Below, in pieces: positions 7,034 to 61,179 of a stretch of DNA of 64,000 nt (position 1 is the stretch's first letter; every line of letters starts with the position of its first letter). This stretch comes from Schmidtea polychroa (lineage: Eukaryota): positions 86,552,001 to 86,616,000 of the forward strand of contig CM097885.1 in NCBI GenBank assembly GCA_044892525.1, read 5' to 3'. The translations under genes and the position numbers were made by a program. Below the pieces are notes generated by a model. That model had not been told where the DNA came from, ran no database searches, and was given only the letters and a program-made list of their open reading frames with translations.

Positions 7034-7131
7034 AGTCCACAACACCTCGTATTCCCAAGCGGTCACCCATCCAAGTACTAACGAGGCCTTAACCTGCTTA
7101 ACTTCCGAGATCGAACGAGATCGGGTGAACC
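7034..7131 (-). pseudogene. RNA5S: 5'-truncated 5S rRNA gene (nt 22-119) downstream of E2
   Basis: GGTTCACCCGATC...GTGTTGTGGACT followed by T-run; first 21 nt replaced by element 3' end. Confidence 0.95.
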
Positions 7132-7735
7132 GTAAAAGTTTATTATTAAAACAAATTTGAATTTTTGTACAAGCGGACAATGCTCAACATGGAGCACGCC
7201 ATTCGGAAAATAACAAAGTCAAAAGAGTCAGAAAGATATCAAATAATCACAAATGTTTGAGAGTTTTTCGACTCAATTGTCAATGCTTCTTTTCTGAACT
7301 GTCCTCGGCTCTGATTTGTGAAATTGTCATCGGATCAGTGAATTTGATTGTCCGGCTTTGCACATCGATGATTTGAGACAGCAGATTTGAGGTGCTGCAA
7401 CTTGTCTGAAGGTCTAATCAGTCTGTTGTGAGTTATTGACAGGACTCGAATGCAAACGAGGGATCATCAGATGACATCCGAGCAACAGCAGACTTATCAG
7501 GATCTTGACTGAAATCAGCAATCATCGCTATGCAGAATATGACCTTTTTACATCTAGATATTTTTACAGAAAGATAGCATGTATACATATATATTTATAA
7601 ATAATCCACGTACAAGAGGGAATATCTAAAAAGTCTAAAAAATCTAATAATACATAAATACTTTTATACACAAAACATTTAAATTAAAAATTTAAACTAT
7701 GATAATGCCAATAGGGGGAATGAATGTGCCTTGAG

Positions 7736-10700
7736 TCATTTAATACTCGGGAATTTGAATTTATCGAGATCAATCAAGACGCCGTTTTTGTGGTAGTGCC
7801 ACCGTCTTGCAGAGTGTGAAATATTGCTCATGGCACAATCTCTCATTAAGCCTTTCAAACGACTACGATCAATTCCTATTTTGAGAAGAATTTCAGGAGT
7901 CTTTGGAGGGAAAGAACCTAAAGAACCGATGATACAGGTATCAAGTTCAACATTGAAATCAGGTTTGACATCTTTTATTTGTCTCCTGAGTGATTCATAT
8001 TTTTGCAGATTGAGCGAGTCAACGTTTTCAAAATTATTCACAGTGTCGCACGGACATTTCATGTCAACTAGAAAGATCTTTTTCCTTGCCAAATCCGTGA
8101 TCATCAAGTCAATTCGTTCCTTGGAGTATGGAACAAGTGAACAAACATGGTCAACAACAACAATCAGATTTGGGTTTGTTGTAAGGTGAGAAGTTATCAG
8201 TTTAAGACAGTCATTGTGGCGCTCAGCACCAAGAGTAAGATGAACCTTACAAGATTGAATAATGTGTGACATTGTCTCCTCTTCACTGTGACATAGTCGA
8301 CAGAGTCTAGTGTCACCTCTATTATGTGGTTTAGCTTTGTTGGAAAGGGTGTTTGTGCGAGCTCGGTGAATAAAGTTCCAAGCAAATTCCGACATGTCAC
8401 CTCGAAAGATTGCTTTATTTATCTTAGGTGCAAGTTTTATCGCCGAAATAATGAAACCCGAGGTACAGCTTTTTTCCCATTTTGAAAGATAAGAGCCATG
8501 AAGAGCCATGTGTAAAACTTTCGATGTGGTTTTGCGAAGATCACTAGTTAGAATGCATGTGCCACGTATTTCACTTGTAATATAAAGTGATGGTTCTTTC
8601 TTTGTGACTATAAATGAGATGTTTATGTCATGTTCTTTTTTAAAGAAAGCAATCGCCGTTCTAACTCTCTGAAATCGAGTCTTTCTACCAGAATGAACAG
8701 GTTTTGATTCTTTACCATTGAACCAATCAAGACTTTCTTGTAGTGTTGGTGTTTTAATACCGAGTCGTGGTCCAGTTACAAAGTTAAGAGAGTCGAGGTT
8801 AATCTTTCGCGCGTATTCACATTTCGAAGTAAGGAGTCTGAAAAAGTGTGTTATTGTCTGCGTGTGATATTCATCAAGAAGATCAACGCAGTTTGCCCCT
8901 CCGTTTTCAGTTGAATTGTAAAAATAACTTACTTCAGAGTGATTAGGCAAGAACATCATTTTCCTAAAACAATTTCTTAATTCGCTAGTGATGTTTACAG
9001 AAAGATTTTTGTTCTCACTAGATTTTGAAAGAGCACTAGTTTTAATTTCACGTGTTCTAAAAGGAAAGATCAAACGAGAGTGGACAAAGACCTTATATGC
9101 TTTAAGTTTCTGCCAGCCAAGTAAGTCAGAGTCAGCAAGTTTTCTAGTATCAGAGACTGCTTTCTTAAGAATCTCATATGGACTTTGATCAGTTTCCTCA
9201 CCAACTGGGACGCCAAGATACTTATAGAATTCATTTGGCAGCAATTTCTTTATTTTGATGTCATTAATTACGATTTCACTTTCCGATTGGGTCTTTGGAA
9301 GTTGTAAATACCCACATTTTTCAGGCCGATATACGAAACCAATTTCAGCAGCAGTTGTCACAGCTATATTTGTGATTTTCTGTAGGTCATTAGCAGATTT
9401 TGCAACAAGAGCAATATCGTCAGCATATGCCAGAATCTTGACAGGAGATTCTCCAATCATAAAGGGTTCACAGTCAAATCTAGAGACAGCTTCAAGTACA
9501 GGGTTGATGGCCAAAGCAAACAAGATCATCGAAATAGGACATCCTTGTTTGACACCCTGTTTTATTGGAATTTTCGGAGTCAAGATTGGACCACAACTAT
9601 AAAATGTGCTTGTGTCGGAATATAACATTTGCAGAATAAAAGCAAACTCCTCACTTACTCCAACGAATCGAAGTAAGGACCACATATACTCATGTGGGAC
9701 ACTGCCAAAAGCGTCTTTTATATCGAGCCAGGCTATAGCAATAGGAGAGTTCTTACTGTATTTTGAGTGTTCTAGAGCTGATGAAAGAATCGAATTGTGC
9801 TCAACACATCCATCATGTCTAGAGCCACCTTTTTGTCCAACATGCAAAAGGTCATTTCTCTCTATCCATAATGTCAAACGACTCGCAAGACATGAGGCAA
9901 ACAATTTGTAGATAACAGAAAGTAAAGCGATTGGACGCCAAGACGAACAATCCTCATATTTCCCATCTTTGTCAGGCTTAGGAATCAGAAGTGTTTTAAA
10001 ACTTTTCCAATTGTCAGGTATGATTTTATCGAAAATGATTTTATTGAATAGAAAGCACAGTAATTTACCTTTGGGATCAAGGAGCAGCAAGTCTCGATAT
10101 TGTATACCATCAATACCCGGACTTGTGTTGTCAGCTCGCTTGAGTTCATAAATTACTTCAAGTTCTGAAAACGGTTCCAGGTCAAGTTTTTGTTGGGAAC
10201 GTTTACAAAAGCCAAATGTCTTAGTCCAGTTTCCTTGAAAAGGTGATTTTATCGAGAAATTTAAAACAATATTTTGAAATGTCGGTCTTTTACTGACATC
10301 TGTGTTGTTAATAATTTTATTGACAGTCCATTTCATGTCAGTCATAAATTTGGCTATTAATTTAGCTTTATTAAGTTTAGCGGGTTTTTTCTTATTACCC
10401 AAATACGGTTTGTGAGTTGAAATTAAGCGATTTGGGAACTGTTCATTGATGATCTCAATGATTTCATTAATGCTAATATTTGAAATTTGTTGTAGAAGTT
10501 CCTCAACCTTGGTTAGGCGTTGTTCTAATTTTAAATTAACTTCTTTCTTTTTAACGATTTTAGATAGCATTGTATTTTGCCCTTTTTGAAGTTCTTTGAT
10601 TATTGGGAGTAGTGAGTTTATGGTGTTACCTATCTCATTTAGGTTTAAATTTACAAGAGGTAGGTCATTCGCATAATTTTTGACAAAAGCGCAAATAAGA

Positions 10701-12352
10701 AGTTTCATCACAAGGCCAGATCCGCGGATAACATGCAGACATTCACCAATATTAATTACACGGCCAGGTGTTTCCTTGATCTCATTGATTTTATTTCGTA
10801 GAGTCTTACAAATAGGCAAGTAATTTTCCGTACTAGACAGAGTCGTTGGATTTATGATGTAATACTCATCTGTGGTATAATCAATGATTAGCAGAATTTC
10901 CCGATATTTTGGGGGAGCGACGATGGCGAATATTATTTGTGCTCTGATGAGGCCGTCATAGTTTAAAAAATCATTTAGGTGTTGGGTGCAATCTTCAAGG
11001 ATTGCAGAGCACATCGTTGCATTCAATAAAATGAAATTTGAATTTAGTTTTAAGCTATCGAAATACTTGGAAAGTATTTCTTCATTTATTTTGAAATTTA
11101 TTGAGTTTAAATTTTTGCAGATCTCATTTGCCTGTTGGATTTTAGCTGATTTTAGGAACTCACTGGTACTTGTATGAGATATTGTTTTCCCGATAATTAC
11201 TCTTTCAATCAGTTCAATAAAGGCACAAGCAAAGAGATGTGAGTCAGCAGATGGAATGGAAGTATAATCAATGTTGTGATTGGGATCAAATAAGATTTTC
11301 TTGTGTGTAATTAAGAATCTATTGAGATAGTCGGTCATGTTTTCTCCTATACCAAAAAGTCTCTCAGTTACAATTTTGTTGTGAAAATTAAACATGTAAC
11401 TGTGTCCCTTAACAAGTGAAAAAAGATAAAGACTCCAATTTGTGTCGTTTGGAATGACGCTGATGACAAGGTCTATTCCAGAAAATTGTCTGAACGTCAC
11501 ATTTTCCCTAATAAATGTGTCGTTCTGTGCAATGACATTGGAAGTCAGTTCAGGAGAAAGGACAGATATGTTGGTTCTCCTTTCAAAATATTTGCTAAGT
11601 AAACTCGAGATGCAGGAGTTCTGTTCCATGAGAAATGCCTGGTTCTGGGTAGGCTTTTTCTTAACTCCATTGCGCTTGATTTCCTCCATAAACTTTGGTA
11701 GGCCACCCCCCGAAATTTTCGCGACACCATGAGGCTGGTCAATCTGAAATTGATGAACTTTTTCTCTAATTTCCTCAATAAAATTGTTCGGAAAACATTT
11801 CCACTCTCCACTTATCATCATAGCATATGCACAGATGTAAGGTCCACAATCGTAACTGTTATCTTGGTAAGTAAAGTTATTGTGTGGGTGAAAAGATACA
11901 GCAGCTTTGAGATCAAACAGATTATTAAGAGCCAGAGTGATTCTAGTAGCACTTGTCTTGTTAGTAAGATCATGTCGCTTTCGAAAGATTGGGTCAATAA
12001 AGTAGGATAACAAAGTGGTTTTACAATAAACAAAGAGTATCCAATGAGATTTATTTATGTTGAGGGGACATAATATTATTTGCGCATTGTAGACTTTTTC
12101 TGGAATCGGAAAAATGTTCTCATTAAAGTCAGTGCGCAGTATTTCAACTATAAAGCATTTAAGTGGCGCAAAATCTGGGTTACTGATGAGATTTTCAAGG
12201 TAGTGGTCGATATCATCATCAGTGAACCAGATTTTTGGATCACGAACTACATTTTGATAAGTTTTATTAATTAATGCCTTATTAATGTTTAATGTGCTGT
12301 CTGCATCAGTCTCCTTAGAGATTAAAGCAGATTCTGAGACTGATGCAGGCAC
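7736..12352 (-). CDS. E2 ORF2, 1538 aa: Ulp1-like protease(s), RT, CCHC knuckle, restriction-like endonuclease
   Basis: Motifs SHWILF...YQDNSYDCG; SWRPIAL; LDIKDAFGSV; GVKQGCPIS; YADD; CRLCHSEEETMSHIIQSC; RIDLMITD...LVDMKCP; the first codon is GTG, not ATG. Confidence 0.95.
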   Translation of the reverse strand: MPASVSESALISKETDADSTLNINKALINKTYQNVVRDPKIWFTDDDIDHYLENLISNPDFAPLKCFIVEILRTDFNENIFPIPEKVYNAQIILCPLNINKSHWILFVYCKTTLLSYFIDPIFRKRHDLTNKTSATRITLALNNLFDLKAAVSFHPHNNFTYQDNSYDCGPYICAYAMMISGEWKCFPNNFIEEIREKVHQFQIDQPHGVAKISGGGLPKFMEEIKRNGVKKKPTQNQAFLMEQNSCISSLLSKYFERRTNISVLSPELTSNVIAQNDTFIRENVTFRQFSGIDLVISVIPNDTNWSLYLFSLVKGHSYMFNFHNKIVTERLFGIGENMTDYLNRFLITHKKILFDPNHNIDYTSIPSADSHLFACAFIELIERVIIGKTISHTSTSEFLKSAKIQQANEICKNLNSINFKINEEILSKYFDSLKLNSNFILLNATMCSAILEDCTQHLNDFLNYDGLIRAQIIFAIVAPPKYREILLIIDYTTDEYYIINPTTLSSTENYLPICKTLRNKINEIKETPGRVINIGECLHVIRGSGLVMKLLICAFVKNYANDLPLVNLNLNEIGNTINSLLPIIKELQKGQNTMLSKIVKKKEVNLKLEQRLTKVEELLQQISNISINEIIEIINEQFPNRLISTHKPYLGNKKKPAKLNKAKLIAKFMTDMKWTVNKIINNTDVSKRPTFQNIVLNFSIKSPFQGNWTKTFGFCKRSQQKLDLEPFSELEVIYELKRADNTSPGIDGIQYRDLLLLDPKGKLLCFLFNKIIFDKIIPDNWKSFKTLLIPKPDKDGKYEDCSSWRPIALLSVIYKLFASCLASRLTLWIERNDLLHVGQKGGSRHDGCVEHNSILSSALEHSKYSKNSPIAIAWLDIKDAFGSVPHEYMWSLLRFVGVSEEFAFILQMLYSDTSTFYSCGPILTPKIPIKQGVKQGCPISMILFALAINPVLEAVSRFDCEPFMIGESPVKILAYADDIALVAKSANDLQKITNIAVTTAAEIGFVYRPEKCGYLQLPKTQSESEIVINDIKIKKLLPNEFYKYLGVPVGEETDQSPYEILKKAVSDTRKLADSDLLGWQKLKAYKVFVHSRLIFPFRTREIKTSALSKSSENKNLSVNITSELRNCFRKMMFLPNHSEVSYFYNSTENGGANCVDLLDEYHTQTITHFFRLLTSKCEYARKINLDSLNFVTGPRLGIKTPTLQESLDWFNGKESKPVHSGRKTRFQRVRTAIAFFKKEHDINISFIVTKKEPSLYITSEIRGTCILTSDLRKTTSKVLHMALHGSYLSKWEKSCTSGFIISAIKLAPKINKAIFRGDMSEFAWNFIHRARTNTLSNKAKPHNRGDTRLCRLCHSEEETMSHIIQSCKVHLTLGAERHNDCLKLITSHLTTNPNLIVVVDHVCSLVPYSKERIDLMITDLARKKIFLVDMKCPCDTVNNFENVDSLNLQKYESLRRQIKDVKPDFNVELDTCIIGSLGSFPPKTPEILLKIGIDRSRLKGLMRDCAMSNISHSARRWHYHKNGVLIDLDKFKFPSIK

Positions 12353-12361
12353 GCATTTTCA
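12301..12361 (-). promoter_or_regulatory. Putative UGA readthrough signal, E2
   Basis: UGA 12359-12361; perfect 13-bp inverted repeat 12336-12348 / 12301-12313 with 22-nt loop. Confidence 0.65.
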
Positions 12362-15070
12362 TTTAGTTTTAGGAGCATTTCTCCTTGTATTTTTGAAAGG
12401 TTGCTGCTCCATGACACTGTTATAAACGTTGTTGGTCACAATATCAGTTGAAACGCCCCCATCAATATCTACAGGGAATTTTATTTCAGGTGTCTCATCA
12501 CCATTTCTCAGCGGTGACTCAACAACTTCATGATCAGCTATGGAACAAGAGGGGTCTTCCAAAGGATTTTCAAAGGATTCAGCAATACTGTCAACAATAG
12601 CTGAGTCAGTGGCATTGTTCATCTGACCAGTCATTTCCAAAGACGCGATAGGCAAAATATAATCCAGTATTTTAGAGATCATAATGCTCATCTTACTGGT
12701 ACATATCTTGGTACAATTTCGTGGAATACGAAAATTAAACCTATTGTTGGTCAAGAAACGTTTTTTGTCTCTAATGATAAAGTATAGGAGTCGCTTTGCT
12801 CTCTCCGTGTCAGAATCATTTGATTCATTTTTAAATTCATTTATTTTATTACTAATTTTATCAAGCGCATTTAACTGATCTATCTTTTGAGGTAAAGCAA
12901 CATCTAGAGTTTCAAGGAAGTTGTTTATTTCAGAGATCGTTTTTGGAGAAATGATATTGTGTATAAGGTCAATCTCACGAGATAAATTCAGTTGACGGAG
13001 TCTTAAAAGTCTTTCCTGACAACTGGAATAATAGTAAGAAGAACAAGGAATCATTTTAATCATCTCTGGAGCCCAGTTTTCAATGTTGTCACATCTTAGT
13101 GCGTTGCAATTCTCAATATTCGTTATTGAGTGTATCAAAAAGCAATTGCGTAAATAGTTAAGTACGTATTCATCAAATGTGGCATTTGAAGTGTACTCCA
13201 GTGTACCTTTTAACTGTAAGTAGTTTAAGTGAAAGATTATATTAACCAATTTTTCAGACGAATTCGATTGAGAAAGTAGAGATCGTAGTACATCGTCTTT
13301 CTCAGACATGCTAAGTAAGTTCAGTAGGCCAAGATTAAACATAATGTCTGACTGGCTCTCAAAATTCGAAGCCCCTTCATCTCCAGCTCTACCAGATTTC
13401 ACAAACATACCCTCTACAAATGAAATTTGCTCAGGAAATCCTCTCTCCGATCTCAGAGTCTGAATGAGCTGGACCAACTTTTCAGGATTCTCTGCGATGT
13501 TCTCAGTGAAAAACAATTCAGCTAACTCAGGGAAAGATTTATAAAGATCGCGTACTTGTGAACGAGAAAGCTCAGCTGTCTCACCATTGGAATTCAAACT
13601 ATTAGGAGAACCACTTTCAAGTAAGTCTAACATGACAAAATCACCATCTTGATACTTGATCTGTGATTTTATCAGGTAGTCCGGGAGAATCCCTTGCTTT
13701 TTCATTAAGCTCAAAGCAGTGTTTATCTGTTCTCCCCGCAATTTAGCGTTCCCTATAGTTGATGTTTCTGCAAGTTTTGTAGATAGTACAAATAAAAATT
13801 TCTTAATTGCTAATGATGCTGGGATAAACTTTGTCGAACCACTGACGACTGATATAATTTTAGAATTAATTATTGATGTTTTTATTTTTTTAATATTTAA
13901 TTTCTTTTCTTTAAAAGTTTGTAAATTAATATTTACACATATATTATGGTTTCTATAAAATAAATTTAGAAAACCAGACAATTTTAAAGGATTTTCAGTT
14001 TGAGAAATTTTCGCTAGTTCGGAATTTAACAATTCAAATTTTTTAGGGTATTCCTTATATTTTAATAGTTTAACAAATTTTGGAAAAGCACTAAGGAACT
14101 GATGCTTCTCGTTCTTATTCAGAGTTCTTACAAGTAAGTTACAGTTATTTATTTTCGAATTTATTAAACTGTTTTCATTTTTTTGGTTAACTTGAATATT
14201 TAATAGCTTAGTGCTATCTTTAACGGGTAAAGGTTTATCAATTTTTAAATTGTTAATATTCGAAGATTTTGATTTAATTAATTCAACCTTATTTTTAATA
14301 ATGTTGTTATTGCTTAATTCATTTGATTTATTTAAATTTAATTTTTCATATTCAAATAAAGGTAATTTTGAAATATCTTTTTTAATTAAATCATTTTTAA
14401 TATTTATTTCGAGATTAGAATCATCCACTTTCCAAGGACCCGAAACGATGCGCTGTCCAGACGAAAAATCAGCGTTGGAAGAATAATTGGCGTCCTTTGC
14501 ATTTTCATTTTTATTAAAAGGCAATTTATCATCTTTAGTATTTTTATGATTTAAGTTATAATTTAACGTTTCTTGTTTATTAATTAAATCATTTTTAATA
14601 GATATTTGAAAATTAGAGTACTCCTTATTCCAAGGACCTGAAACAATGCGATGACCAGACGAAAAATCAGCATTTGAAGAATAATTGCCTTTTTTAATTA
14701 AATCATTTTGAATATTTATTTCGAGATTAGAGTACTCCTTATTCCAAGGACCTGAAACTATGCGATGTACAGACGAAGAATCAGCATTTGAAGAATAATT
14801 GCCTTTTTTATTTAAATATAATTTTTCAGATTTACTAATTTTATCTTTAAAATCTTTATTAGACAAATTATTTATATGGGCGCTATCCAAATTCCCCTTA
14901 TTGACATTAGCATAAAAATTTACATTTAAAAATTCAATTATTAAACTAAGTTTATTAGAAAACTTACGGAAATCTCTTTCTAGCCCATGAATTCTTCGAG
15001 ACATATTTCCATCTTCAAATGAGTAGGCATCCTTACGTCCAGATCGTCCAAAATTCATGTTTCTTCGCAT
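12359..15070 (-). CDS. E2 ORF1, family B (first ATG = MRRNMNF at 15070; ORF track extends to TTG at 15121)
   Basis: 63 aa shorter than E6 ORF1 because of an N-terminal internal deletion; homologous to family A ORF1. Confidence 0.85.
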   Translation of the reverse strand: MRRNMNFGRSGRKDAYSFEDGNMSRRIHGLERDFRKFSNKLSLIIEFLNVNFYANVNKGNLDSAHINNLSNKDFKDKISKSEKLYLNKKGNYSSNADSSSVHRIVSGPWNKEYSNLEINIQNDLIKKGNYSSNADFSSGHRIVSGPWNKEYSNFQISIKNDLINKQETLNYNLNHKNTKDDKLPFNKNENAKDANYSSNADFSSGQRIVSGPWKVDDSNLEINIKNDLIKKDISKLPLFEYEKLNLNKSNELSNNNIIKNKVELIKSKSSNINNLKIDKPLPVKDSTKLLNIQVNQKNENSLINSKINNCNLLVRTLNKNEKHQFLSAFPKFVKLLKYKEYPKKFELLNSELAKISQTENPLKLSGFLNLFYRNHNICVNINLQTFKEKKLNIKKIKTSIINSKIISVVSGSTKFIPASLAIKKFLFVLSTKLAETSTIGNAKLRGEQINTALSLMKKQGILPDYLIKSQIKYQDGDFVMLDLLESGSPNSLNSNGETAELSRSQVRDLYKSFPELAELFFTENIAENPEKLVQLIQTLRSERGFPEQISFVEGMFVKSGRAGDEGASNFESQSDIMFNLGLLNLLSMSEKDDVLRSLLSQSNSSEKLVNIIFHLNYLQLKGTLEYTSNATFDEYVLNYLRNCFLIHSITNIENCNALRCDNIENWAPEMIKMIPCSSYYYSSCQERLLRLRQLNLSREIDLIHNIISPKTISEINNFLETLDVALPQKIDQLNALDKISNKINEFKNESNDSDTERAKRLLYFIIRDKKRFLTNNRFNFRIPRNCTKICTSKMSIMISKILDYILPIASLEMTGQMNNATDSAIVDSIAESFENPLEDPSCSIADHEVVESPLRNGDETPEIKFPVDIDGGVSTDIVTNNVYNSVMEQQPFKNTRRNAPKTK

Positions 15071-15377
15071 TTTAAAAATTTCCTCCAATATCCACGTTTT
15101 TATATTTCCTGCAACTAACAAAATAAATTATGCAAGAAAAATTACCTTTAGTGATGCAATCCAATACGAATTCCGATGATGTAACCTAGTGCTAGTATAT
15201 TATTTTTCCAACCAAATATTCAATCATTGAATTTTTTTCAATTGATTTCATCGATTCGCCAACATATGTTGAGATAGGCTGAAAAAATGAAATAAAAAAA
15301 ATTTAATGGCCATAAAAATATACCTGATTGTCCACTCAGAATTGAATTCATCAAAATTGAATTGTGGAATAAAAAAA

Positions 15378-15475
15378 AGTCCACAACACCTCGTATTCCC
15401 AAGCGGTCACCCATCCAAGTACTAACGAGGCCTTAACCTGCTTAACTTCCGAGATCGAACGAGATCGGGTGAACC
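15378..15475 (-). pseudogene. RNA5S: 5'-truncated 5S rRNA gene (nt 22-119) downstream of E3
   Basis: Same junction ...cttttac|GGTTCACC. Confidence 0.95.
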
Positions 15476-16078
15476 GTAAAAGTTTATTATTAAAACAAAT
15501 TTGAATTTTTGTACAAGCGGACAATGCTCAACATGGAGCACGCCATTCGGAAAATAACAAAGTCAAAAGAGTCAGAAAGATATCAAATAATCACAAATGT
15601 TTGAGAGTTTTTCGACTCAATTGTCAATGCTTCTTTTCTGAACTGTCCTCGGCTCTGATTTGTGAAATTGTCATCGGATCAGTGAATTTGATTGTCCGGC
15701 TTTGCACATCGATGATTTGAGACAGCAGATTTGAGGTGCTGCAACTTGTCTGAAGGTCTAATCAGTCTGTTGTGAGTTATTGACAGGACTCGAATGCAAA
15801 CGAGGGATCATCAGATGACATCCGAGCAACAGCAGACTTATCAGGATCTTGACTGAAATCAGCAATCATCGCTATGCAGAATATGACCTTTTTACATCTA
15901 GATATTTTTACAGAAAGATAGCATGTATACATATATATTTATAAATAATCCACGTACAAGAGGGAATATCTAAAAAGTCTAAAAAATCTAATAATACATA
16001 AATACTTTTATACACAAAACATTTAAATTAAAAATTTAAACTATGATAATGCCAATAGGGGAATGAATGTGCCTTGAA

Positions 16079-20740: not shown

Positions 20741-20749
20741 GCATTTTCA
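20689..20749 (-). promoter_or_regulatory. Putative UGA readthrough signal, E3
   Basis: UGA 20747-20749 in frame with ORF2; same 13-bp stem as E2. Confidence 0.65.
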
Positions 20750-42497: not shown

Positions 42498-42506
42498 GCA
42501 TTTTCA
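42446..42506 (-). promoter_or_regulatory. Putative UGA readthrough signal, E6
   Basis: UGA 42504-42506; perfect arms 42481-42493 / 42446-42458. Confidence 0.65.
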
Positions 42507-45817: not shown

Positions 45818-46439
45818 GTAAAAGTTTATTAAAATAACAAATTTGAATTTTTATATACATGCGGACAATGCTCAACATGGAGCACGCCATTCAGAAAATA
45901 ACAAAGTCAAAAGAGTCAGAAGGATATCAAATAATCATAAATGTTTGAGAGTTTTTCGACTCAATTGTCAATGCTTCTTTTCTGAACTGTCCTCGGCTCT
46001 GATTTGTGGAATTGTCATCGGAACAGTCCGGCTTTGCATGACGACGATTTGTGGCAGCAGATTTGATGTTGCTGCAACTTGGCTGACGGTCTGATCAGTC
46101 TGTTGTTTGATATTGACAGGACTCGAATGCAAACGAGGTATCATCTAATTCGCATTAACTGAATAGTACCATCTCTACAGATGACATCCGAGCAACAGCA
46201 GACATATCAAGATTTTGATTGAGATCAGCAACCATCGGCATGCAGCATATGTCCTTTTAACATCTAAATAGTTTTTTTTTTACAAAAAGATATGCATATA
46301 TATATTTATAAATAATCCTCGTACAGGGGGGAGTATCTAAAAGCTGTAACATATCTAATAAAATACTTTTATACACAAAACATTTATAACAAAGTATTTA
46401 CAACAATGATAATGCCAATAAGGGGTTAAGGCCATCGAA

Positions 46440-49400: not shown

Positions 49401-49469
49401 ATAATTTATTGTGCTGTCTGCATCAGTCTCGTTAGAGATTGGGGCAGATATTGGGACTGATGCAGGCAC
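46440..49469 (-). pseudogene. E7 ORF2, 1009 aa, lacks degenerate Ulp domains and RT N-terminal motifs (probably defective)
   Basis: ...SPELTSN|EDCSSWRP...; ADNTSPGIDG and KTLLIPKP motifs deleted. Confidence 0.8.
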
Positions 49470-49478
49470 GCACCTTCA
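49418..49478 (-). promoter_or_regulatory. Putative UGA readthrough signal, E7
   Basis: UGA 49476-49478; same stem as E4. Confidence 0.62.
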
Positions 49479-52271: not shown

Positions 52272-52446
52272 TTCTTAATAAATAAATAAATAGATTTTAG
52301 GTTTTCTTTAAATTTTCAAATTCTTCGCCAACATTTGTTTAGATAGGCTGAAAAAATGAAATAAAAAAAATTTAATGGCCATAAAAATATACCTGATTGT
52401 CCACTCAGAATTGAATTCATCAAAATTGAATTGTGGAATAAAAAAA

Positions 52447-52565
52447 AGTCCACAACACCTCGTATTCCCAAGCGGTCACCCATCCAAGTACTAACGAGGC
52501 CTTAACCTGCTTAACTTCCGAGATCGAACGAGATCGGGTGAACCCAGATTAGTATGGTCGTGGAC
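52447..52565 (-). rRNA. RNA5S: 5S rRNA, intact
   Basis: Matches consensus copy. Confidence 0.97.
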
Positions 52566-52753: not shown

Positions 52754-52851
52754 AGTCCACAACACCTCGTATTCCCAAGCGGTCACCCATCCAAGTACTA
52801 ACGAGGCCTTAACCTGCTTAACTTCCGAGATCGAACGAGATCGGGTGAACC
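52754..52851 (-). pseudogene. RNA5S: 5'-truncated 5S rRNA gene (nt 22-119) downstream of E8
   Basis: Same junction. Confidence 0.95.
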
Positions 52852-53469
52852 GTAAAAGTTTATTAAAATAACAAATTTGAATTTTTATATACATGCGGAC
52901 AATGCTCAACATGGAGCACGCCATTCAGAAAATAACAAAGTCAAAAGAGTCAGAAGGATATCAAATAATCATAAATGTTTGAGAGTTTTTCGACTCAATT
53001 GTCAATGCTTCTTTTCTGAACTGTCCTCGGCTCTGATTTGTGGAATTGTCATCGGAACAGTCCGGCTTTGCATGACGACGATTTGTGGCAGCAGATTTGA
53101 TGTTGCTGCAACTTGGCTGACGGTCTGATCAGTCTGTTGTTTGATATTGACAGGACTCGAATGCAAACGAGGTATCATCTAATTCGCATTAACTGAATAG
53201 TACCATCTCTACAGATGACATCCGAGCAACAGCAGACTTATCAAGATTTTGATTGAGATCAGCAACCATCGGCATGCAGCATATGTCCTTTTAACATCTA
53301 AATAGTTTTTTACAAAAAGATATGCATATATATATTTATAAATAATCCTCGTACAGGGGGGAGTATCTAAAAGCTGTAACATATCTAATAAAATACTTTT
53401 ATACACAAAACATTTATAACAAAGTATTTACAACAATGATAATGCCAATAAGGGGTTAAGGCCATCGAG

Positions 53470-56400
53470 TTAATTGTTATTAAAGAGCTGGGTTTTATCC
53501 GGATCTACTAAAATGCCAGTCTTGTGAAAATACCACCGTCTGGCAGAATGTGTAATGTTGCTTATTGCACATTCTTTCAGTAAACCCTTAAGCTCAGTTT
53601 GCTTTACTCCAATTTTAAGAAGGATGTTTGGAGTTTGTGGTGGAAAAGATCCAAGTGAGCCAATAATGCAAGTGTCAAGTTCGACTTGAAAGTCTGGTTT
53701 GACAACTTGTATTTGCTTTTTCAGCGAGTCATATTTTTGCAAGTTAAGCAAATCGACATTTTCGAAGTTGTTCAGAGAATCGCATGGACATTTCATGTCG
53801 ACAAGAAAGATTTTCTTTCTGGTCATGTCAGTGATCATAAGATCAACTCGTTCCTTGGAGTTTGGTACAAGAGAACAGACATGATCCACAACGATGAGCA
53901 AATTAGAATTCTGTTTCAAATTCGAGGTGATAAGTTTCAGACAATCATTGTGTCGTTCAGCACCAAGAGTCAGATGGACCTTACATGATTGGATTACATG
54001 TGACATTGTCTCATCTTCCGTGTGACACAATCGACAAAGTCTCTTTTCGCCTTTATTATTTGGCTTTGCATTAATGGAAAGAGTGTTTGTGCGAGCCCGA
54101 TGTATGAAATTCCAGGCAAATTCCGACAAATCACTTCGGAATATTGCCTTGTTTATTTTTGGTGAAAGTTTTACTGCAGAAGCTATAAAGTTCGAAATAC
54201 AGCTCTTTTCCCATTTCGAAAGGTACGAGTCACAGAGTGCCATGTGTAAGACTTTCGATGTGGTTTTGCGAAGATCACTAGTTAGAATGCATGTGCCACG
54301 CATAGTTGTTGTTATGTATAACGATGGCTCATGATTTGTGACGATGAATTGAATTTTGATGTTGTGTGTCTTTTCAAAGAACGCAACTGCTATTCTCGCT
54401 CTCTGAAAACGAGTTTTCTTTCCAGAATGGTAGGGTTTAGACTCTCTACCATTGAGCCAGTCAAGACTTTCTTGTAGTGTTGGCTCTTTAATACCAAGTC
54501 GCGGTCCTGTGACAAATTTTAAAGAATCGATGTTAATCTTTCTGGCAAGGTCACATTTCGAAGTAAAAAGTCGGAAAAAGTGTGTGATTGTCTGCGTATG
54601 ATATTCATCGAGAAGATCAACGCAGTTTGCCCCTCCGTTTTCAGTTGAATTGTAAAAATAGCTTACTTCAGAGTGAATAGGCAAGAACATCATTTTCCTA
54701 AAACAATTTCTTAATTCGCTAGTGATGTTTACAGAGAGATTTTTGTTCTCACTAGATTTGGAAAGAGCACTGGTTTTAATTTCACGTGTTCTGAAAGCGA
54801 AGATCAAACGAGAATGGACAAAGACCTTATACGCTTTTAGTTTCTGCCAACCAAGTAAATCAGAGTCCGCAAGTTTTCTAGTATCAGAGACTGCCTTTTT
54901 AAGAGTATCATATGGACTTTGATCAGTTTCCTCACCAACCGGAACGCCAAGGTACTGATAGAATTCATTTGGCAGCAATTTCTTTATTTTGATGTCATTA
55001 ATTACGATTTCACTTTCCGATTGGGTCTTTGGAAGTTGTAAATACCCACATTTTTCAGGCCGATATACGAAACCAATTTCAGCGGCAGTTTTTACAGCTA
55101 TATTTGTGATTTTCTGTAGGTCATTAGCAGATTTTGCAACAAGAGCAATATCGTCAGCATATGCCAGAATCTTGACAGGAGATTCTCCAATCATAAAAGG
55201 CTCACACTCAGATCTAGAGACAGCTTCAAGTACAGGATTGATGGCCAAAGCAAACAAGATCATCGAAATAGGGCATCCTTGTTTGACACCCTGTTTTATT
55301 GGAATTTTCGGAGTCAAGATTGGACCACAACTATAAAATGTGCTCGTGTCAGAATATAACATTTGCAGGATAAAAGCGAATTCCTCACTTACTCCAACGA
55401 ATCGAAGTAAGGACCACATATACTCATGTGGGACACTGCCAAAAGCGTCTTTTATGTCGAGCCAAGCTATAGCAATTGGAGAGTTCTTACTGTATTTGGA
55501 GTGTTCTAGAGCTGATGAAAGAATCGAATTGTGCTCAACACATCCATCATGTCTGGAGCCACCTTTTTGTCCAACATGCAAAAGGTCATTTTTATTTATC
55601 CAATATGTCAAACGACTCGCAAGACATGAGGCAAACAATTTGTAAATGACAGAAAGTAAAGCGATTGGACGCCAAGACGAACAATCCTCATATTTCCCAT
55701 CTTTGTCAGGCTTAGGAATCAGAAGAGTTTTAAAGCTCTTCCAATTGTCAGGTATGATTTTATCGAAAATGATTTTATTGAATAGAAAGCACAGTAATTT
55801 ACCTTTGGGATCAAGGAGCAGCAAGTCTCGATATTGTATACCATCAATACCCGGACTTGTGTTGTCAGCTCGCTTGAGTTCATAAATTACTTCAAGTTCT
55901 GAAAACGGTTCCAGGTCAAGTTTTTGTTGGGAGCGTTTACAAAAGCTAAATGTTTTAGTCCAGTTTCCTTGAAAAGGTGATTTTATCAAGAAATTTAAAA
56001 CTATATTCTGGAAGGTCGGTCTTATACTGACATCTGTGTTGTTAATGATTTTATTGACAGTCCATTTCATGTCAGTCATAAATTTAGCGATTAGTTTAGC
56101 TTTATTGAGTTTAGCGGGTCTTTTCTTATTACCCAAATACGGTTTGTGAGTTGAATTTAAGCGATTTGGGAACTGTTCATTGATGATCTCAATGATTTCA
56201 TTAATGCTAATATTTGAAATTTGTTGTAGAAGTTCCTCAACCTTGGTTAGGCGCTGTTCCAATTTTAAATTAACTTCTTTCTTTTTAACGATTTTAGTTA
56301 GCATTGTATTTTGCCCTTTTTGGAGTTCTTTGATTATTGGGAGCAGTGAGTTTATGGTGTTACCTATCTCATTCAGGTTTAAATTTACAAGAGGTAGGTC

Positions 56401-58080
56401 ATTTGCATAATTTTTGATAAAAGCGCAAATAAGGAGTTTGCTCACAAGGCCAGATCCGCGGATAACATGCAGACAATCACCAATATTAATTACACGGCCA
56501 GGTGTTTCCTTGATGTCATTGATTTTATTTCGTAGATTCCTACAAATAGGCAAGTAATTCTCCATACCAGACAGAGTCGTTGGATTTATGATGTAGTACT
56601 CATCTGTGGTATAATCAATGATCAACAGAATTTCCCGATATTTTGGCGGTGCAACGATGGCGAATATTATTTGTGCTCTGATGAGACCGTCATAGTTTAA
56701 AAAATCATTTAGATGTTGGGTGCAATCTTCAAGGATTGCAGAGCACATCGTTGCATTCAATAAAATGAAATTTGAATTTAGTTTTAAGCTATCGAAATAC
56801 TTGGAAAGTATTTCTTCATTTATTTTGAAATTTATTGAGTTTAAATTTTTGCAGATCTCATTTGCCTGTTGGATTTTAGATGATTTTAGGAACTCACTGG
56901 TACTTGTATGAGATATTGTTTTCCCGAAAATTACTCTTTCAATCAGTTCAATAAAGGCACAAGCAAAGAGATGTGAGTCAGCAGATGGAATGGAAGTATA
57001 ATCGATGTTGTGATTGGGATCAAATAAGACTTTCTTGTGTGTAATTAAGAATCTATTGAGATAGTCGGTCATGTTTTCTCCTATTCCGAAAAGTCTTTCA
57101 GGTACAATTTTGTTGTGGAAATTAAACATGTAACTGTGTCCCTTATCAAGTGAAAAAAGATAAAGACTCCAATTTGTGTCGTTTGGAATGACGCTGATGA
57201 TAAGATCTATTCCTAAAAATTGTCTGAACGTCACATTTTCTCTAATAAATGTGTCGTTCTGTGCAATGACATTGGAAGTCAGTTCAGGAGAAAGAACAGA
57301 TATGTTGGTTCTCCTTTCAAAATATTTGCTAAGTAAACTCGAGATGCAGGAGTTCTGTTCCAGGAGAAATGCCTGGTTCTGGGTAGGCTTTTTCTTAACT
57401 CCATTGCGTTTGATTTCCTCCATAAACTTTGGTAGGCCGCCCCCCGAGTTTTTTTGGTGTTTGTGTTGTGTAGAAGTTTGTGATTGATGGACCTCCTTTC
57501 TAATTATTTCAACAAAACAGTCAGGAAAGCTATGCCATTCTCCGCTTATCATCATAGCGTATGCGCAGATGAATGGTCCACAATCATAATTGTTGGTCTG
57601 ATAGCCGAAGTTTTCATGTGGGTGGAACGTCATGGCTGCTTTTAGATTGAAAACATGATTCAAAGATCTTGTTATTTGAAGAGCATGTGTTTTATTGGAG
57701 AGTTTATGCCGATACTCAAAGATTGGGTCAATAAAGTAGGAAGTCAAAGAATTCTTACAATATACAAACAAGATCCAGTGAGTTTTGTCAATATTAAGGG
57801 GGCATAAAATTATTTGCGCTTTAAAAATCTCTTCCGGAATCGGAAAAATGTCCTCATTAGGATTAGCGCGTAATATTTCAACAATGAAACATTTAAGCGG
57901 CGCAAAGTTTGGGTCACTGATGTGATTTTCAAGGTAGTGGTCGATATCATCATCAGTGAACCAGATTTTTGGATCACGCGCTGGGTTTTCGCTATTCTGG
58001 TAAGTTTTGACATGATTTAATGTGCTGTCTGCATCTTTCTCATCAGAGATTGGAGCAGATATTGAGATTGATGCAGGCAC
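53470..58080 (-). CDS. E8 ORF2, 1536 aa: Ulp1-like x3, RT, CCHC, RLE
   Basis: Same motifs as E4 ORF2. Confidence 0.95.
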   Translation of the reverse strand: MPASISISAPISDEKDADSTLNHVKTYQNSENPARDPKIWFTDDDIDHYLENHISDPNFAPLKCFIVEILRANPNEDIFPIPEEIFKAQIILCPLNIDKTHWILFVYCKNSLTSYFIDPIFEYRHKLSNKTHALQITRSLNHVFNLKAAMTFHPHENFGYQTNNYDCGPFICAYAMMISGEWHSFPDCFVEIIRKEVHQSQTSTQHKHQKNSGGGLPKFMEEIKRNGVKKKPTQNQAFLLEQNSCISSLLSKYFERRTNISVLSPELTSNVIAQNDTFIRENVTFRQFLGIDLIISVIPNDTNWSLYLFSLDKGHSYMFNFHNKIVPERLFGIGENMTDYLNRFLITHKKVLFDPNHNIDYTSIPSADSHLFACAFIELIERVIFGKTISHTSTSEFLKSSKIQQANEICKNLNSINFKINEEILSKYFDSLKLNSNFILLNATMCSAILEDCTQHLNDFLNYDGLIRAQIIFAIVAPPKYREILLIIDYTTDEYYIINPTTLSGMENYLPICRNLRNKINDIKETPGRVINIGDCLHVIRGSGLVSKLLICAFIKNYANDLPLVNLNLNEIGNTINSLLPIIKELQKGQNTMLTKIVKKKEVNLKLEQRLTKVEELLQQISNISINEIIEIINEQFPNRLNSTHKPYLGNKKRPAKLNKAKLIAKFMTDMKWTVNKIINNTDVSIRPTFQNIVLNFLIKSPFQGNWTKTFSFCKRSQQKLDLEPFSELEVIYELKRADNTSPGIDGIQYRDLLLLDPKGKLLCFLFNKIIFDKIIPDNWKSFKTLLIPKPDKDGKYEDCSSWRPIALLSVIYKLFASCLASRLTYWINKNDLLHVGQKGGSRHDGCVEHNSILSSALEHSKYSKNSPIAIAWLDIKDAFGSVPHEYMWSLLRFVGVSEEFAFILQMLYSDTSTFYSCGPILTPKIPIKQGVKQGCPISMILFALAINPVLEAVSRSECEPFMIGESPVKILAYADDIALVAKSANDLQKITNIAVKTAAEIGFVYRPEKCGYLQLPKTQSESEIVINDIKIKKLLPNEFYQYLGVPVGEETDQSPYDTLKKAVSDTRKLADSDLLGWQKLKAYKVFVHSRLIFAFRTREIKTSALSKSSENKNLSVNITSELRNCFRKMMFLPIHSEVSYFYNSTENGGANCVDLLDEYHTQTITHFFRLFTSKCDLARKINIDSLKFVTGPRLGIKEPTLQESLDWLNGRESKPYHSGKKTRFQRARIAVAFFEKTHNIKIQFIVTNHEPSLYITTTMRGTCILTSDLRKTTSKVLHMALCDSYLSKWEKSCISNFIASAVKLSPKINKAIFRSDLSEFAWNFIHRARTNTLSINAKPNNKGEKRLCRLCHTEDETMSHVIQSCKVHLTLGAERHNDCLKLITSNLKQNSNLLIVVDHVCSLVPNSKERVDLMITDMTRKKIFLVDMKCPCDSLNNFENVDLLNLQKYDSLKKQIQVVKPDFQVELDTCIIGSLGSFPPQTPNILLKIGVKQTELKGLLKECAISNITHSARRWYFHKTGILVDPDKTQLFNNN

Positions 58081-58089
58081 GCACCTTCA
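58029..58089 (-). promoter_or_regulatory. Putative UGA readthrough signal, E8 (weakened stem)
   Basis: UGA 58087-58089; 7 bp + 2x2 internal loop + 4 bp. Confidence 0.55.
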
Positions 58090-60906
58090 TTTACTTTTGT
58101 GTGCAGTTTGTCTAGTCTTCCTACTGGATATGCTTGTTTTTTGGAGTTCTAGTTGGTCGCTGTTGATCACCTCAGACGTTGATGGTGTTTTATCAATGTC
58201 AGTGTCAAGGCATTGCTTTTGACTACTATTGTCATCTTCGATTGTGTCTAACAGATCAACATCATTCACAGAATAACAAGGTTCCACTACAAGTGCTTCC
58301 ACTGGTGCATGACAGTCAGGTTGGTTCTTATTCTGGTTAATGTCTTTTTTGTCAATTGTAGCGTTAAGGCTTTCAAGAATATCTGTTATGTGATTAGCCA
58401 TACCAGTGGTGCAGATCTTTCTACAAAGTCGTGGAATGCGATAAGAGAAGTTATTGTTGAATAGAAATTTCTTTTTGTCTCTAATGACAAAGAAGAGGAA
58501 TCTTTTTGCACGACTCATCTCATTCATATCTGACTCATGTGCAATCTCATTAATCATTTTACCTAATTTTCCAAGAAGACCTAGTTGGACAGCCTTTTGT
58601 GGGTAAGCTTCATCAACTTTGTCAAGAAATCTATTGACATCTCTTATGGTTTCAGGGGAAATGATGTTGTGTAGGGTGTCAATTTCGTTTGACAGCTTCC
58701 ATTGTCGAAGCTTCAGAATTCTCTCTTTGCAACTAGAGAAATGATAAGACTGGGAAGGTAATGTATCGGTCATGCTGGGTGCCCAACTCTCGAAATTCTC
58801 AAGGCAGAGTGAGCTACAATTATCTATGTCTGTGACAGAGTATAACAACAGACAGTTACGGATGTAGTTGTAAACATAATCGCCATATGTTCCATTTTTA
58901 ATATGTCTAAGTTCACCCTTCAATTGTAGGTAATTAAGGTGGAAAATGACATCAATCAGCTTAGTTGAAGATTTTGGCTGGCGCAATAATGATTTTAATA
59001 CTTCATCTTTTTCGGACATTTCGATGAAGTTTAACAAGCCAAGATTAAACATAATGTCTGATTGGCTTTCAGAATTCGATGTCTCTTTGTTATTTATTTT
59101 AATAGTTTTTATAAGTTTACCCCCCACAAATGAGATCTGCTCGGGAAACCCTTTTTCTGATTTTAACCTTTCAATTAGCTCTATTAATTTCTCAGGGCTC
59201 TCTGTGATGTTTTCAATGAAGAGCAATTCAGAAATTTCTGGGAAGGATTTATAAAGATCGCGCACTTGCGACCGAGAAAGCTCCAACGTTCTAACCGCCG
59301 AACTCGTACTACTGGGAGCGTCATCGCCAAGAAGGTCTAGCATGACAAAGTCACCGTCTTGATATTTTATTTGCGACCTTACTAAGTAGTCTGGGAGAGT
59401 CCCCTGCTTTTTAAGTAAGTTAAGCGCAATATTTATTTGTTCCCCTCGAACTTTGGTGTTCCCTATGGACGAGGTCTCAGAAAGATGAGTCGAAAGAACA
59501 AACAAGAATTTCTTAATTGTTGCAGGCGCTTTGAAAAATTCGTCTCTATTATTGGATGCCGTTACAATACCCGAGTCAATAATAGAGGTCTTAAAAATAA
59601 CCCCCGGGTCAGTCTGAGATTTTGAGGGCTTCTTGTTTGTCAACCCCAAATTTATGTTTACGCACACATTGCCGTTCCTATAAAAATAGCCAACGAATCC
59701 CTCTATATTTAATGGATTGGCAATTGCCGTTATGCTTCTCAAATCAGCATTTAGCTTTTTGAATTTCTGCGGGGTCTCCTTTAATTTGAGGGCCTTAATT
59801 ATCGCAGGGAAAGTTTTAAAGAAAATGGTCTTTTCTTTAGGTTTTAAGACTCGAAATATATTCAATTTATTATTACTACCAGCTTCAGAGTCATTTCCCG
59901 AAGATTTTTGCCGATTTTCGAAAGTTTTCAAATTTTTATAATTTATATTTGAAATTTGTTTTTTATTTTGAAAATTAAATTTAGAATTTGATAAATTTTC
60001 TTTTTTAAATTTAATTTTGCTATCAAGGTTTTCTGAATTAGTATTTTTGGAAATTTTAAAATTTTTATATTTAAAATTTTCATTTTCTAAATTGGATATG
60101 TTTAAATTATCCAATTTAGCATTTTGTAAATCAGAGCTTTCAAAATCTTGTAAGTTAAATTTAACTTTTCGAGTATTATTATTAAGTATTACTTTTAGGC
60201 CAGAATTCCGCAGATCAGAAATGGATCCAGGCTCATCAGAAGAACTATTATTAATTTTGAAATTTTTAGTTTTTGAAAATAAATTATTTTTATTCAACTT
60301 CTTATTTTTGTTAATTAATCCATTATTATGAAATTCAGGAACATGAGCGTCATTAGGATTAAATCTTGAGGAATTTTGGCTTATTAAACTCTTTTCTGGA
60401 AATTTATCAGACGATTTAAGGGATAAGTTTTTATTTGTATTTGTATGACATGAAACATTATTTGAATTATGATTTAAACCCAAATAATTCCTTTTCATAT
60501 TTGCACTATATGCAATATTTCCCATCAAATTAGAGTTCAAATTCCCCTTAGAGCATGGGAAATTATTCTTATTATTAGTTTGAACATCTTGATGGTATTT
60601 CGAAGATGAATTTTTATTTAATTTGTAATTTTTATTAAAATTAGTGGTATCCTTAATTCTATCATAATAAAAATCACTAGCCCCATGATCTTCATTAATT
60701 TTCAATTCATTTTCATTTAAATAGAACCTATCGACATTACTATTTACATTTCTAAATAAAGGAAAATTTTCACCTAAATAATTATTTAAATTATGATTAT
60801 CCTTATCCTTCCCCCTATTGGCATTAGGATTATAAAATTTTACATTTAAAAAGTTCATTATAAAATCAAGTTTATAATTAAACTTACTGATCCAATCTTC
60901 AGTCAT
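58087..60906 (-). CDS. E8 ORF1, family A, 939 aa
   Basis: ATG start; E1-like N-terminus, E4-like middle. Confidence 0.85.
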   Translation of the reverse strand: MTEDWISKFNYKLDFIMNFLNVKFYNPNANRGKDKDNHNLNNYLGENFPLFRNVNSNVDRFYLNENELKINEDHGASDFYYDRIKDTTNFNKNYKLNKNSSSKYHQDVQTNNKNNFPCSKGNLNSNLMGNIAYSANMKRNYLGLNHNSNNVSCHTNTNKNLSLKSSDKFPEKSLISQNSSRFNPNDAHVPEFHNNGLINKNKKLNKNNLFSKTKNFKINNSSSDEPGSISDLRNSGLKVILNNNTRKVKFNLQDFESSDLQNAKLDNLNISNLENENFKYKNFKISKNTNSENLDSKIKFKKENLSNSKFNFQNKKQISNINYKNLKTFENRQKSSGNDSEAGSNNKLNIFRVLKPKEKTIFFKTFPAIIKALKLKETPQKFKKLNADLRSITAIANPLNIEGFVGYFYRNGNVCVNINLGLTNKKPSKSQTDPGVIFKTSIIDSGIVTASNNRDEFFKAPATIKKFLFVLSTHLSETSSIGNTKVRGEQINIALNLLKKQGTLPDYLVRSQIKYQDGDFVMLDLLGDDAPSSTSSAVRTLELSRSQVRDLYKSFPEISELLFIENITESPEKLIELIERLKSEKGFPEQISFVGGKLIKTIKINNKETSNSESQSDIMFNLGLLNFIEMSEKDEVLKSLLRQPKSSTKLIDVIFHLNYLQLKGELRHIKNGTYGDYVYNYIRNCLLLYSVTDIDNCSSLCLENFESWAPSMTDTLPSQSYHFSSCKERILKLRQWKLSNEIDTLHNIISPETIRDVNRFLDKVDEAYPQKAVQLGLLGKLGKMINEIAHESDMNEMSRAKRFLFFVIRDKKKFLFNNNFSYRIPRLCRKICTTGMANHITDILESLNATIDKKDINQNKNQPDCHAPVEALVVEPCYSVNDVDLLDTIEDDNSSQKQCLDTDIDKTPSTSEVINSDQLELQKTSISSRKTRQTAHKSK

Positions 60907-61081
60907 TTCTTAATAAATAAATAAATAGATTTTAGGTTTTCTTTAAATTTTCAAATTCTTCGCCAACATTTGTTTAGATAGGCTGAAAAAATGAAATAAA
61001 AAAAATTTAATGGCCATAAAAATATACCTGATTGTCCACTCAGAATTGAATTCATCAAAATTGAATTGTGGAATAAAAAAA

Positions 61082-61179
61082 AGTCCACAACACCTCGTAT
61101 TCCCAAGCGGTCACCCATCCAAGTACTAACGAGGCCTTAACCTGCTTAACTTCCGAGATCGAACGAGATCGGGTGAACC
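61082..61179 (-). pseudogene. RNA5S: 5'-truncated 5S rRNA gene (nt 22-119) downstream of E9
   Basis: Same junction. Confidence 0.95.

Follow-up and report, generated by a model that had tools for sequence, protein, structure and literature searches.

The 64-kb window analysed here (the whole stretch, positions 86,552,001 to 86,616,000 of Schmidtea polychroa contig CM097885.1) is occupied by a tandem array of 5S rRNA genes, and this array is filled with nine copies (E0-E8) of a retrotransposon without long terminal repeats (non-LTR type) that is 8.1-8.3 kb in length. Our data indicate, with a probability that we would place at about 0.85, that the copies represent two co-resident families, A and B, together with an A/B/A recombinant, of an autonomous element of the NeSL/Utopia group with integration machinery of its own that has a single position of the 5S gene as its target. 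Every copy lies on the minus strand, as do the 5S genes, so that all of the insertions are in the sense orientation, and the complete element carries two open reading frames (ORFs), ORF1 and ORF2.

The 5S array extends throughout the window in units of 307 bp, each consisting of a 119-bp gene and a 188-bp spacer. An Rfam scan detected 13 5S loci (genes or remnants), of which five were intact and eight had lower scores, and the first 21 nucleotides (nt) of the 5S sequence were present in the five intact genes only. Eight of the 13 units are therefore disrupted, and their inactivation represents a cost to the host. The scan of the window found no spliced-leader (SL) RNA and no other Rfam family in the 5S spacer, which agrees with an earlier reading of the sequence alone that had seen no SL1 exon there. 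The window has a G+C content of 35%, contains no runs of N and includes no host genes. Taken by itself, the sequence suggests a metazoan host, and this G+C content, together with a likeness of the 3′ end to the planarian element LIN25_SM, hints weakly at a flatworm. The 5S features are as follows.

24082-24388, minus strand: reference intact 5S unit of 307 bp (gene at 24270-24388 plus the 188-bp spacer)
23963-24081, minus strand: intact 5S gene (Rfam)
24270-24388, minus strand: intact 5S gene (Rfam)
36520-36638, minus strand: intact 5S gene (Rfam)
36827-36945, minus strand: intact 5S gene with two substitutions in nt 1-21, just upstream of the insertion site
52447-52565, minus strand: intact 5S gene (Rfam)
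7034-7131, minus strand: 5S remnant that begins at nt 22 and reaches the end of the gene, on the 3′ side of copy E1
15378-15475, 24577-24674, 32881-32978 and 37134-37231, minus strand: 5S remnants identical to 7034-7131
45720-45817, 52754-52851 and 61082-61179, minus strand: further 5S remnants identical to 7034-7131

To the 5S remnants the elements are joined in one way only. A 26-nt sequence that spans the 3′ junction (element …AATAAACTTTTAC followed by 5S GGTTCACCC) occurred exactly eight times in the window without a mismatch, and did not occur in any of 100 shuffles. The last base of the element, C, differs from the G at 5S nt 21, which places the junction unambiguously between nt 21 and nt 22. 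The sequence-only reading had described eight 3′ junctions, in sense orientation and in both families, that were alike at 5S nt 22, and the eight exact matches at nt 21/22 confirm it. The eight are identical but do not stand as independent events, since the shared 5′ junctions and the duplicated flanks establish only that there were at least two. The 5′ junctions differ between the families, and none of them retains 5S nt 1-21. Every copy of family A abuts position 303 of the 307-bp unit, which corresponds to a target deletion of 25 bp (4 bp of spacer and nt 1-21), and every copy of family B abuts position 242, which corresponds to a deletion of 86 bp (65 bp of spacer and nt 1-21). Two families as far apart as A and B (synonymous divergence, dS, of ~1.1 in ORF2) are inserted at one and the same nucleotide, in one orientation, with 5′ junctions that differ, and this indicates specificity for 5S. 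The 5S/spacer piece that lies upstream of the copies was also considered as a part of the element, an idea that was rejected as unsupported: apart from two single-nucleotide polymorphisms (SNPs) these pieces match array units exactly, whereas the bodies of the elements have diverged by 2-4%.

Four full-length copies have both ORFs open, and one more has a single in-frame stop. The two copies with internal deletions, E4 and E6, have both kept the 5′ and 3′ ends of the element. The copies are listed below, all on the minus strand.

1-6910, minus strand: E0, family B, cut by the window start; 5′ end at spacer position 242; ORF1 (4051-6858) open, ORF2 open as far as visible
7132-15193, minus strand: E1, 8062 bp, A/B/A mosaic; 5′ end at spacer position 303; ORF1 (12359-15121) and ORF2 (7736-12352) both open
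15476-23778, minus strand: E2, 8303 bp, family A; ORF2 (16079-20740) open, ORF1 (20747-23698) with one in-frame stop
24675-32757, minus strand: E3, 8083 bp, family B reference; both ORFs open
32979-36396, minus strand: E4, 3418 bp, family B; both ORFs affected by one large internal deletion
37232-45535, minus strand: E5, 8304 bp, family A; ORF1 (42504-45455) and ORF2 (37836-42497) both open
45818-52323, minus strand: E6, 6506 bp, family B; ORF1 (49476-52271) open, N-terminal part of ORF2 lost in one large internal deletion
52852-60958, minus strand: E7, 8107 bp, family B; ORF1 (58087-60906) and ORF2 (53470-58080) both open
61180-64000, minus strand: E8, family A, extends beyond the window end; ORF2 open as far as visible

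Families A and B are ~80% identical in ORF2, and most of ORF1 could not be aligned by blastn; when the ORF1 alignment was forced with MAFFT, an identity of 53-67% was obtained. The last ~330 nt of the 3′ untranslated region (UTR) are 88.5% identical. The ratio of nonsynonymous to synonymous divergence (dN/dS) in ORF2 was 0.16 between the families and 0.18-0.25 within family B, where the synonymous difference is 2-4%. ORF2 is under purifying selection, and the low ratio between close copies of family B means that their differences passed through selection for a working protein.

Along the element, the identity between the families varies widely. It is 53-69% in ORF1 and in the N-terminal half of ORF2, rises to as much as 96% in the core of the reverse transcriptase (RT), drops to 72-77% across the endonuclease region and reaches 89% in the 3′ UTR, a pattern that suggests additional exchange in the RT core and the 3′ UTR, or else strong constraint on them. 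Copy E1 is family A at both ends (97-100% identity with E2) and family B across the N-terminal half of ORF2 (95-98% identity with E3 and E7). Both ORFs have stayed open in the mosaic, which speaks for recombination or gene conversion between the two families.

The coding features of the element were mapped on E3.

25293-29903, minus strand: ORF2, 1536 aa, in frame with ORF1
29304-29786, minus strand: Ulp1/SENP-like cysteine protease domain, residues ~40-200 (Peptidase_C48, model and alignment)
28194-29171, minus strand: two degenerate Ulp1-like repeats, residues ~245-400 and ~420-570 (model and profile-profile comparison)
26766-27542, minus strand: reverse transcriptase, RVT_1, residues 788-1046 (Pfam)
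25554-25859, minus strand: CCHC motif (residues 1349-1366) and PD-(D/E)xK restriction-like endonuclease (RLE)
24675-25292, minus strand: 3′ UTR, 618 nt, ending in AATAAACTTTTAC, with no poly(A)
29910-32705, minus strand: ORF1, 931 aa, ending in UGA
29845-29907, minus strand: stem-loop starting 6 nt past the ORF1 UGA, candidate stimulator of readthrough

Pfam matched ORF2 to Peptidase_C48 (E 5.6e-7) and RVT_1 (E 4e-26). In an alignment of 14 ORF2 sequences, which included 12 relatives from other samples, the protease residues H101, D118, Q161 and C167 were invariant or nearly so, and the YADD of the RT, the CCHC residues (C1349, C1352, H1361 and C1366) and the RH..D..D.K residues of the endonuclease (R1376, H1377, D1413, D1428 and K1430) were all invariant. 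The best sequence matches of ORF2 in the PDB were R2 proteins (E 2.5e-45 over the RT), with a second, weak match to the endonuclease at the C-terminus. AlphaFold modelled residues 1-720 (mean predicted confidence, pLDDT, 71) as three successive copies of one α/β fold, and a Foldseek search with this model against the PDB returned SENP5, Den1 and Ulp1 (E ~1e-5, target TM score ~0.6). Together these matches and invariant residues bear out what had been proposed for ORF2 from its sequence, namely an Ulp1-like protease, an RT, a CCHC motif and an RLE. The Pfam scan of the element proteins found no Exo_endo_phos domain of the apurinic/apyrimidinic endonuclease (APE) type, and no N-terminal zinc finger or Myb domain was found by Pfam or in the model of residues 1-720.

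Profile-profile comparison related the second Ulp1-like repeat to the third with a probability of 88%, and the first to the third with 78%. As read in the window's own sequence, repeats 2 and 3 are without the His and Cys motifs of repeat 1, and only repeat 1 appears to have kept the catalytic His, Asp, Gln and Cys. To our knowledge, a triplicated Ulp1 fold is unusual for a long interspersed nuclear element (LINE). Some 45 residues after the catalytic Cys there is a GG(G) motif (residues 213-215), which per-column counts located in 12 of the 12 sequences that cover the region. Because Ulp1-type enzymes cleave after Gly-Gly, it is plausible by analogy that this motif is a self-cleavage site.

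In the 3′ UTR, an AATAAA is located 13 nt before the element end, and RNAalifold predicted no pairs. A small hairpin with the loop CATGYW was observed ~50-90 nt before the 3′ end, at 24720-24740 (minus strand) in the window and at ~6915-6935, ~6955-6975 and ~7405-7425 in the relatives L002, L001 and L006. By eye, its stem bases appear to be exchanged between lineages, in an alignment whose register could not be fixed. Judged by its sequence, the hairpin may be a protein-binding element of the 3′ UTR. A search of the element for a 5′ ribozyme or another RNA family returned nothing at E<=1 except weak hairpin matches on the stem downstream of ORF1.

ORF1 follows a short 5′ UTR and ranges from 931 to 983 aa. 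Its N-terminal ~340 aa are of low complexity, and its C-terminal ~500 aa form a conserved core, which can be recognised in every relative and in which the two families share 50% identity. A word-based protein search with ORF1 found nothing, and an exhaustive HMMER search found 16 relatives among 1.84 billion representative proteins. The predicted structure shows three β-α-α-α-β-β modules; this pattern hinted at winged-helix-like domains, an assignment that was unsupported and was set aside.

The arrangement of ORF1 and ORF2 suggests how ORF2 may be expressed. In both window families, and in 12 of 12 relatives (L001-L009, L011, L091 and the P0005 contig), ORF1 ends in a stop codon that is followed by ORF2 in the same frame, and the stop was read as UGA in the ten relatives whose sequence was inspected. 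The base after the UGA is C in 8 of 13 cases. Downstream of the UGA lies a stem-loop of 14 pairs, whose nucleotide sequence is conserved among the eight closest elements. When these eight were aligned, 98% of the stem cells were paired, as against 18-41% in slid controls, and compensatory changes were present in 4 of the 14 pairs. Distant relatives have a stem of different sequence at the same offset, and a stem was present in 12 of 13 folds. The same UGA and stem region was seen at 29845-29912 (minus strand) in the window and in relatives that include L001 (2221-2290) and L002 (1980-2050). A leaky stop, an ORF that continues in frame and an RNA structure ~6-10 nt past the stop make up the arrangement known from programmed readthrough in retroviral gag-pol, and the likeness suggests that programmed UGA readthrough may be the means of ORF2 expression. 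We know of no other LINE with programmed stop-codon readthrough.

To place the element, relatives were sought among 5.8 billion proteins, and the closest, from Logan and ENA assemblies, were 30-59% identical. Where the contigs reach the 3′ junction, the relatives lie in other small RNA genes. L001 (43% identical to the window ORF2) has its 3′ end at nt 16/17 of a tRNA-Val gene, which is followed by three intact tRNA-Val genes. L006 (43%) ends at the same point of tRNA-Phe, followed by GGGAGAGCG and leaving a 56-nt remnant, and L011 (30%) ends at the same tRNA-Phe point as L006. L002 (57%) ends at a D-arm-like sequence at the contig edge. L010 carries P0014 (30%, E 1.5e-93), an identity that spans 96% of the RT, CCHC and endonuclease region; this element splits a U2 gene, both halves of which are present, within a U1/U2 array, as Utopia does. 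The contigs of L003, L007-L009 and L091 end before the 3′ junction. Metagenomes of the Joint Genome Institute (JGI) yielded distant RTs and one tRNA-Phe-targeting element, and viral contigs yielded no relatives. The precise ends of relatives inside tRNA-Val or tRNA-Phe genes indicate that exact targeting of RNA polymerase III (Pol III) genes is a trait of the clade. Targeting of 5S itself holds for the two window families; it does not extend to the wider clade, given the relatives in tRNA-Val and tRNA-Phe and the published planarian members in tRNA and 28S genes.

Two further observations were made on these contigs. L010 (1-23939) also contains two APE and RT elements, each with a U2 remnant after it whose start lies at a different position of U2, in the manner of Keno. 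In L005, the 3′ half of a metazoan signal recognition particle (7SL) RNA gene (1-115) lies ~190 bp upstream of ORF1, so that this lineage may target 7SL genes or be their neighbour.

The NeSL clade comprises Utopia, NeSL-1 and R5 (Kojima & Jurka 2015, PMC4640811). Three features would place the window element in the NeSL/Utopia group, nearest to the planarian LIN/R5 lineage: its Ulp1 domain, the 30%-identical relative within U2, and the alignment of its 3′ end with that of LIN25_SM, a planarian element specific for tRNA-Glu (PMC4640811). The same three features uphold the earlier description of the element as NeSL-like. The 3′ ends of the window families, L002, LIN25_SM and LIN15_SM have 11 columns that are invariant in all five, nine of them in the last ~17, in a comparison that takes in the terminal ~43 nt from LIN25_SM and ~26 nt from LIN15_SM (S6 Fig, PMC4640811). 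The next relatives in HMMER searches, P0014-P0020 (E 1e-81 to 1e-93), include the U2-splitting element, and R2 ranks lower and matches over the RT only.

A route of integration can be proposed from these features. By analogy with R2 and target-primed reverse transcription (TPRT), the endonuclease would nick the 5S gene on its antisense strand, opposite nt 21/22, and the 3′-OH released there would then serve as the primer for reverse transcription, which would begin exactly at the 3′ terminus of the element RNA. Because the AATAAA lies so close to the element end, transcripts may carry a few 5S bases, running into nt 22 onward and pairing with the target. Second-strand cleavage and 5′ joining would take place upstream, with the deletion of the family-specific stretch of target. 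The proteins would be supplied by low-frequency readthrough of the UGA, stimulated by the stem-loop, to give an ORF1-ORF2 fusion, and the Ulp1 protease would cut this polyprotein, perhaps at the GG motif. Unequal crossing-over and gene conversion would later duplicate, delete and recombine the copies, and would be the source of most of the copy number in the window.

Several points weigh against the reading that the window holds two families with machinery specific for 5S. Each family has a single 5′ junction across its copies, two flank SNPs are common to four of the five family B copies, E2 and E5 with their flanks are 99.8% identical over 8.9 kb and form a duplicated block, and the E0-E1 block is 97.3% identical to the E7-E8 block over 10 kb, flanks included. 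No 5′-truncated copies with differing junctions were found in the window, and as the sample is a single 64-kb window, copies outside 5S arrays are possible. Only two insertions, one per family, are demonstrably independent, and the single 5′ junctions and the blocks duplicated with their flanks mean that array duplication explains much of the copy number. In the proteins, Pfam and PDB fold searches identified no DNA-binding domain that would account for specificity, ORF1 has no Pfam match, and the AlphaFold model of its core (residues 340-931, pLDDT 75) has no PDB fold match at E<0.8. The class was assigned by domains, relatives and the 3′ end, and in the proposed route the nicking and priming steps are borrowed from R2, while readthrough and self-proteolysis are deduced from sequence features. 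The genomic points in particular, namely the junctions, the SNPs, the blocks of 8.9-10 kb duplicated at 97-99.8% and the two internal-deletion derivatives that keep the same ends, would also fit one or two essentially random 5S insertions that were multiplied by unequal crossing-over with no specificity. Such an origin is hard to reconcile with two families that, at a synonymous divergence of ~1.1, sit at the identical nucleotide and orientation with different 5′ junctions, with purifying selection on ORF2 even between close copies, and with five relatives from other samples that end at exact tRNA or U2 positions. Elements of the RLE type are, in addition, mostly site-specific (PMC4640811). 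We therefore regard random insertion as highly improbable, and purely passive amplification as unlikely.

The element might instead belong to another endonuclease-type clade (R2, R4, HERO or CRE) and have acquired Ulp1 independently, as R2 proteins are its best matches among solved structures and the placement was made by domains, relatives and the 3′ end. However, R2 proteins are the only RLE-type proteins among the PDB matches, the rest being LINE-1 ORF2p and other RTs, so that this ranking carries little information on the clade. The missing N-terminal zinc finger and Myb, the next relatives by sequence at a Utopia-like site in U2 and the 3′ terminus that aligns with planarian LIN25_SM all argue for the NeSL/Utopia group, and an Ulp1-like protease N-terminal to the RT has been reported for NeSL and for Utopia-1_TSP (PMC4640811); another clade is thus very unlikely. 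A different matter is whether the family has already been catalogued in Repbase or Dfam, for example as a flatworm LIN-type entry, in which case only the 5S assignment, or nothing, would be new. Planarian LIN families have been in Repbase since before 2015, several of them with targets (PMC4640811), and the 3′ end of the window element closely resembles that of LIN25_SM. On the other hand, no endonuclease-type 5S-specific retrotransposon was found in the searchable full-text literature, a scope to which Repbase and Dfam do not belong, and the target survey of NeSL-related families by Kojima & Jurka lists no 5S (PMC4640811). A 2024 review states that no transposable element insertion within the 5S gene has been reported, although its own table lists Mutsu and Rex3 as 'into 5S', and the closest protein found in our searches is only 59% identical. 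An existing entry is accordingly unlikely, although it deserves serious consideration.

The sequence-only reading had called the family possibly undescribed, and this stands for the searchable literature, to which the claim has to be confined. What is known is the clade and its habit of switching among small RNA genes; what is new, within that literature, is the 5S target for the class. That reading also spoke of a 'programmable' integrase, which is speculation, as the data show only natural target switching between lineages. Site-specific endonuclease-type LINEs are natural models for TPRT at a chosen site, and a 5S member adds a target to them. The window element and its tRNA-specific relatives are closely related enzymes that recognise different short RNA genes, and this makes them useful in the search for the determinants of target choice. 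The combination of a UGA with a stem-loop and the triple Ulp1 fold are also features that are worth recording. As a tentative and wider interpretation, which we hold with less than even confidence, the window may be one branch of a little-described radiation of Ulp1-bearing NeSL-type elements, in which each lineage occupies a different Pol III gene (5S here; tRNA-Val, tRNA-Phe, another tRNA and possibly 7SL in the relatives). Such a radiation would have arisen by repeated target switching on a conserved RT and endonuclease chassis, with retrovirus-like UGA readthrough and self-proteolysis, and with convergence of the 5S lineage on the ~nt 20 region that the unrelated Mutsu uses. If this is true, comparison of the lineages would expose a modular determinant of target choice in endonuclease-type LINEs.

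Among the known systems, the planarian R5/LIN elements are the most similar. They are likewise site-specific in multicopy RNA genes, with targets that have diversified to 28S, tRNA-Arg and tRNA-Glu (PMC4640811), and they share the A/T-rich 3′ end …AATAAAnnTTTTAA without poly(A), followed by a 5′-truncated target. The 5S nt 21/22 site is absent from their reported targets, and the sequence comparison with them covers the 3′ ends. Utopia shares the precise 3′ junction and the family-specific 5′ boundaries with target deletions (PMC4640811). In contrast to the window element, which lies in a Pol III gene, Utopia is mostly without a protease, encodes one protein and targets U2. NeSL-1 of Caenorhabditis elegans targets the spliced-leader SL1 gene, where the window element targets 5S, and NeSL-1_TV targets tRNA-Pro (PMC4640811). 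Dada-5S of fish is also 5S-specific, but it is a DNA transposon with a transposase and is mechanistically unrelated (PMC8869645).

R2 shows the best PDB relationship for the RT and endonuclease (TPRT complexes 9nl2, 9dou and 8gh6), and it is likewise without poly(A), has an exact 3′ junction and lives in an rRNA gene array that is shaped by crossing-over. It differs in having a single ORF, an N-terminal zinc finger and Myb, a 5′ ribozyme similar to that of hepatitis delta virus, and 28S as its target; the window element has two ORFs, none of these domains or ribozymes was found in it, and its target is 5S. Mutsu has an APE-type endonuclease, belongs to the Tx1 clade and is also present in Hydra. 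Previously described from zebrafish as a 5S-specific LINE, it is likewise reported to insert ~20 nt into 5S, to leave 5S remnants that are truncated at the 5′ end and to be common in arrays where many copies are intact (PMC5340908). It is ~5.5 kb in length and has a poly(A) stretch, whereas the window element has no poly(A), no Exo_endo_phos domain and an RLE. The use of the same 5S region near nt 20 by APE-type Mutsu and by an RLE-type element would be convergence, similar to that of Keno and Utopia on U2 (PMC4640811), and it suggests that this position is favoured by host tolerance or chromatin.

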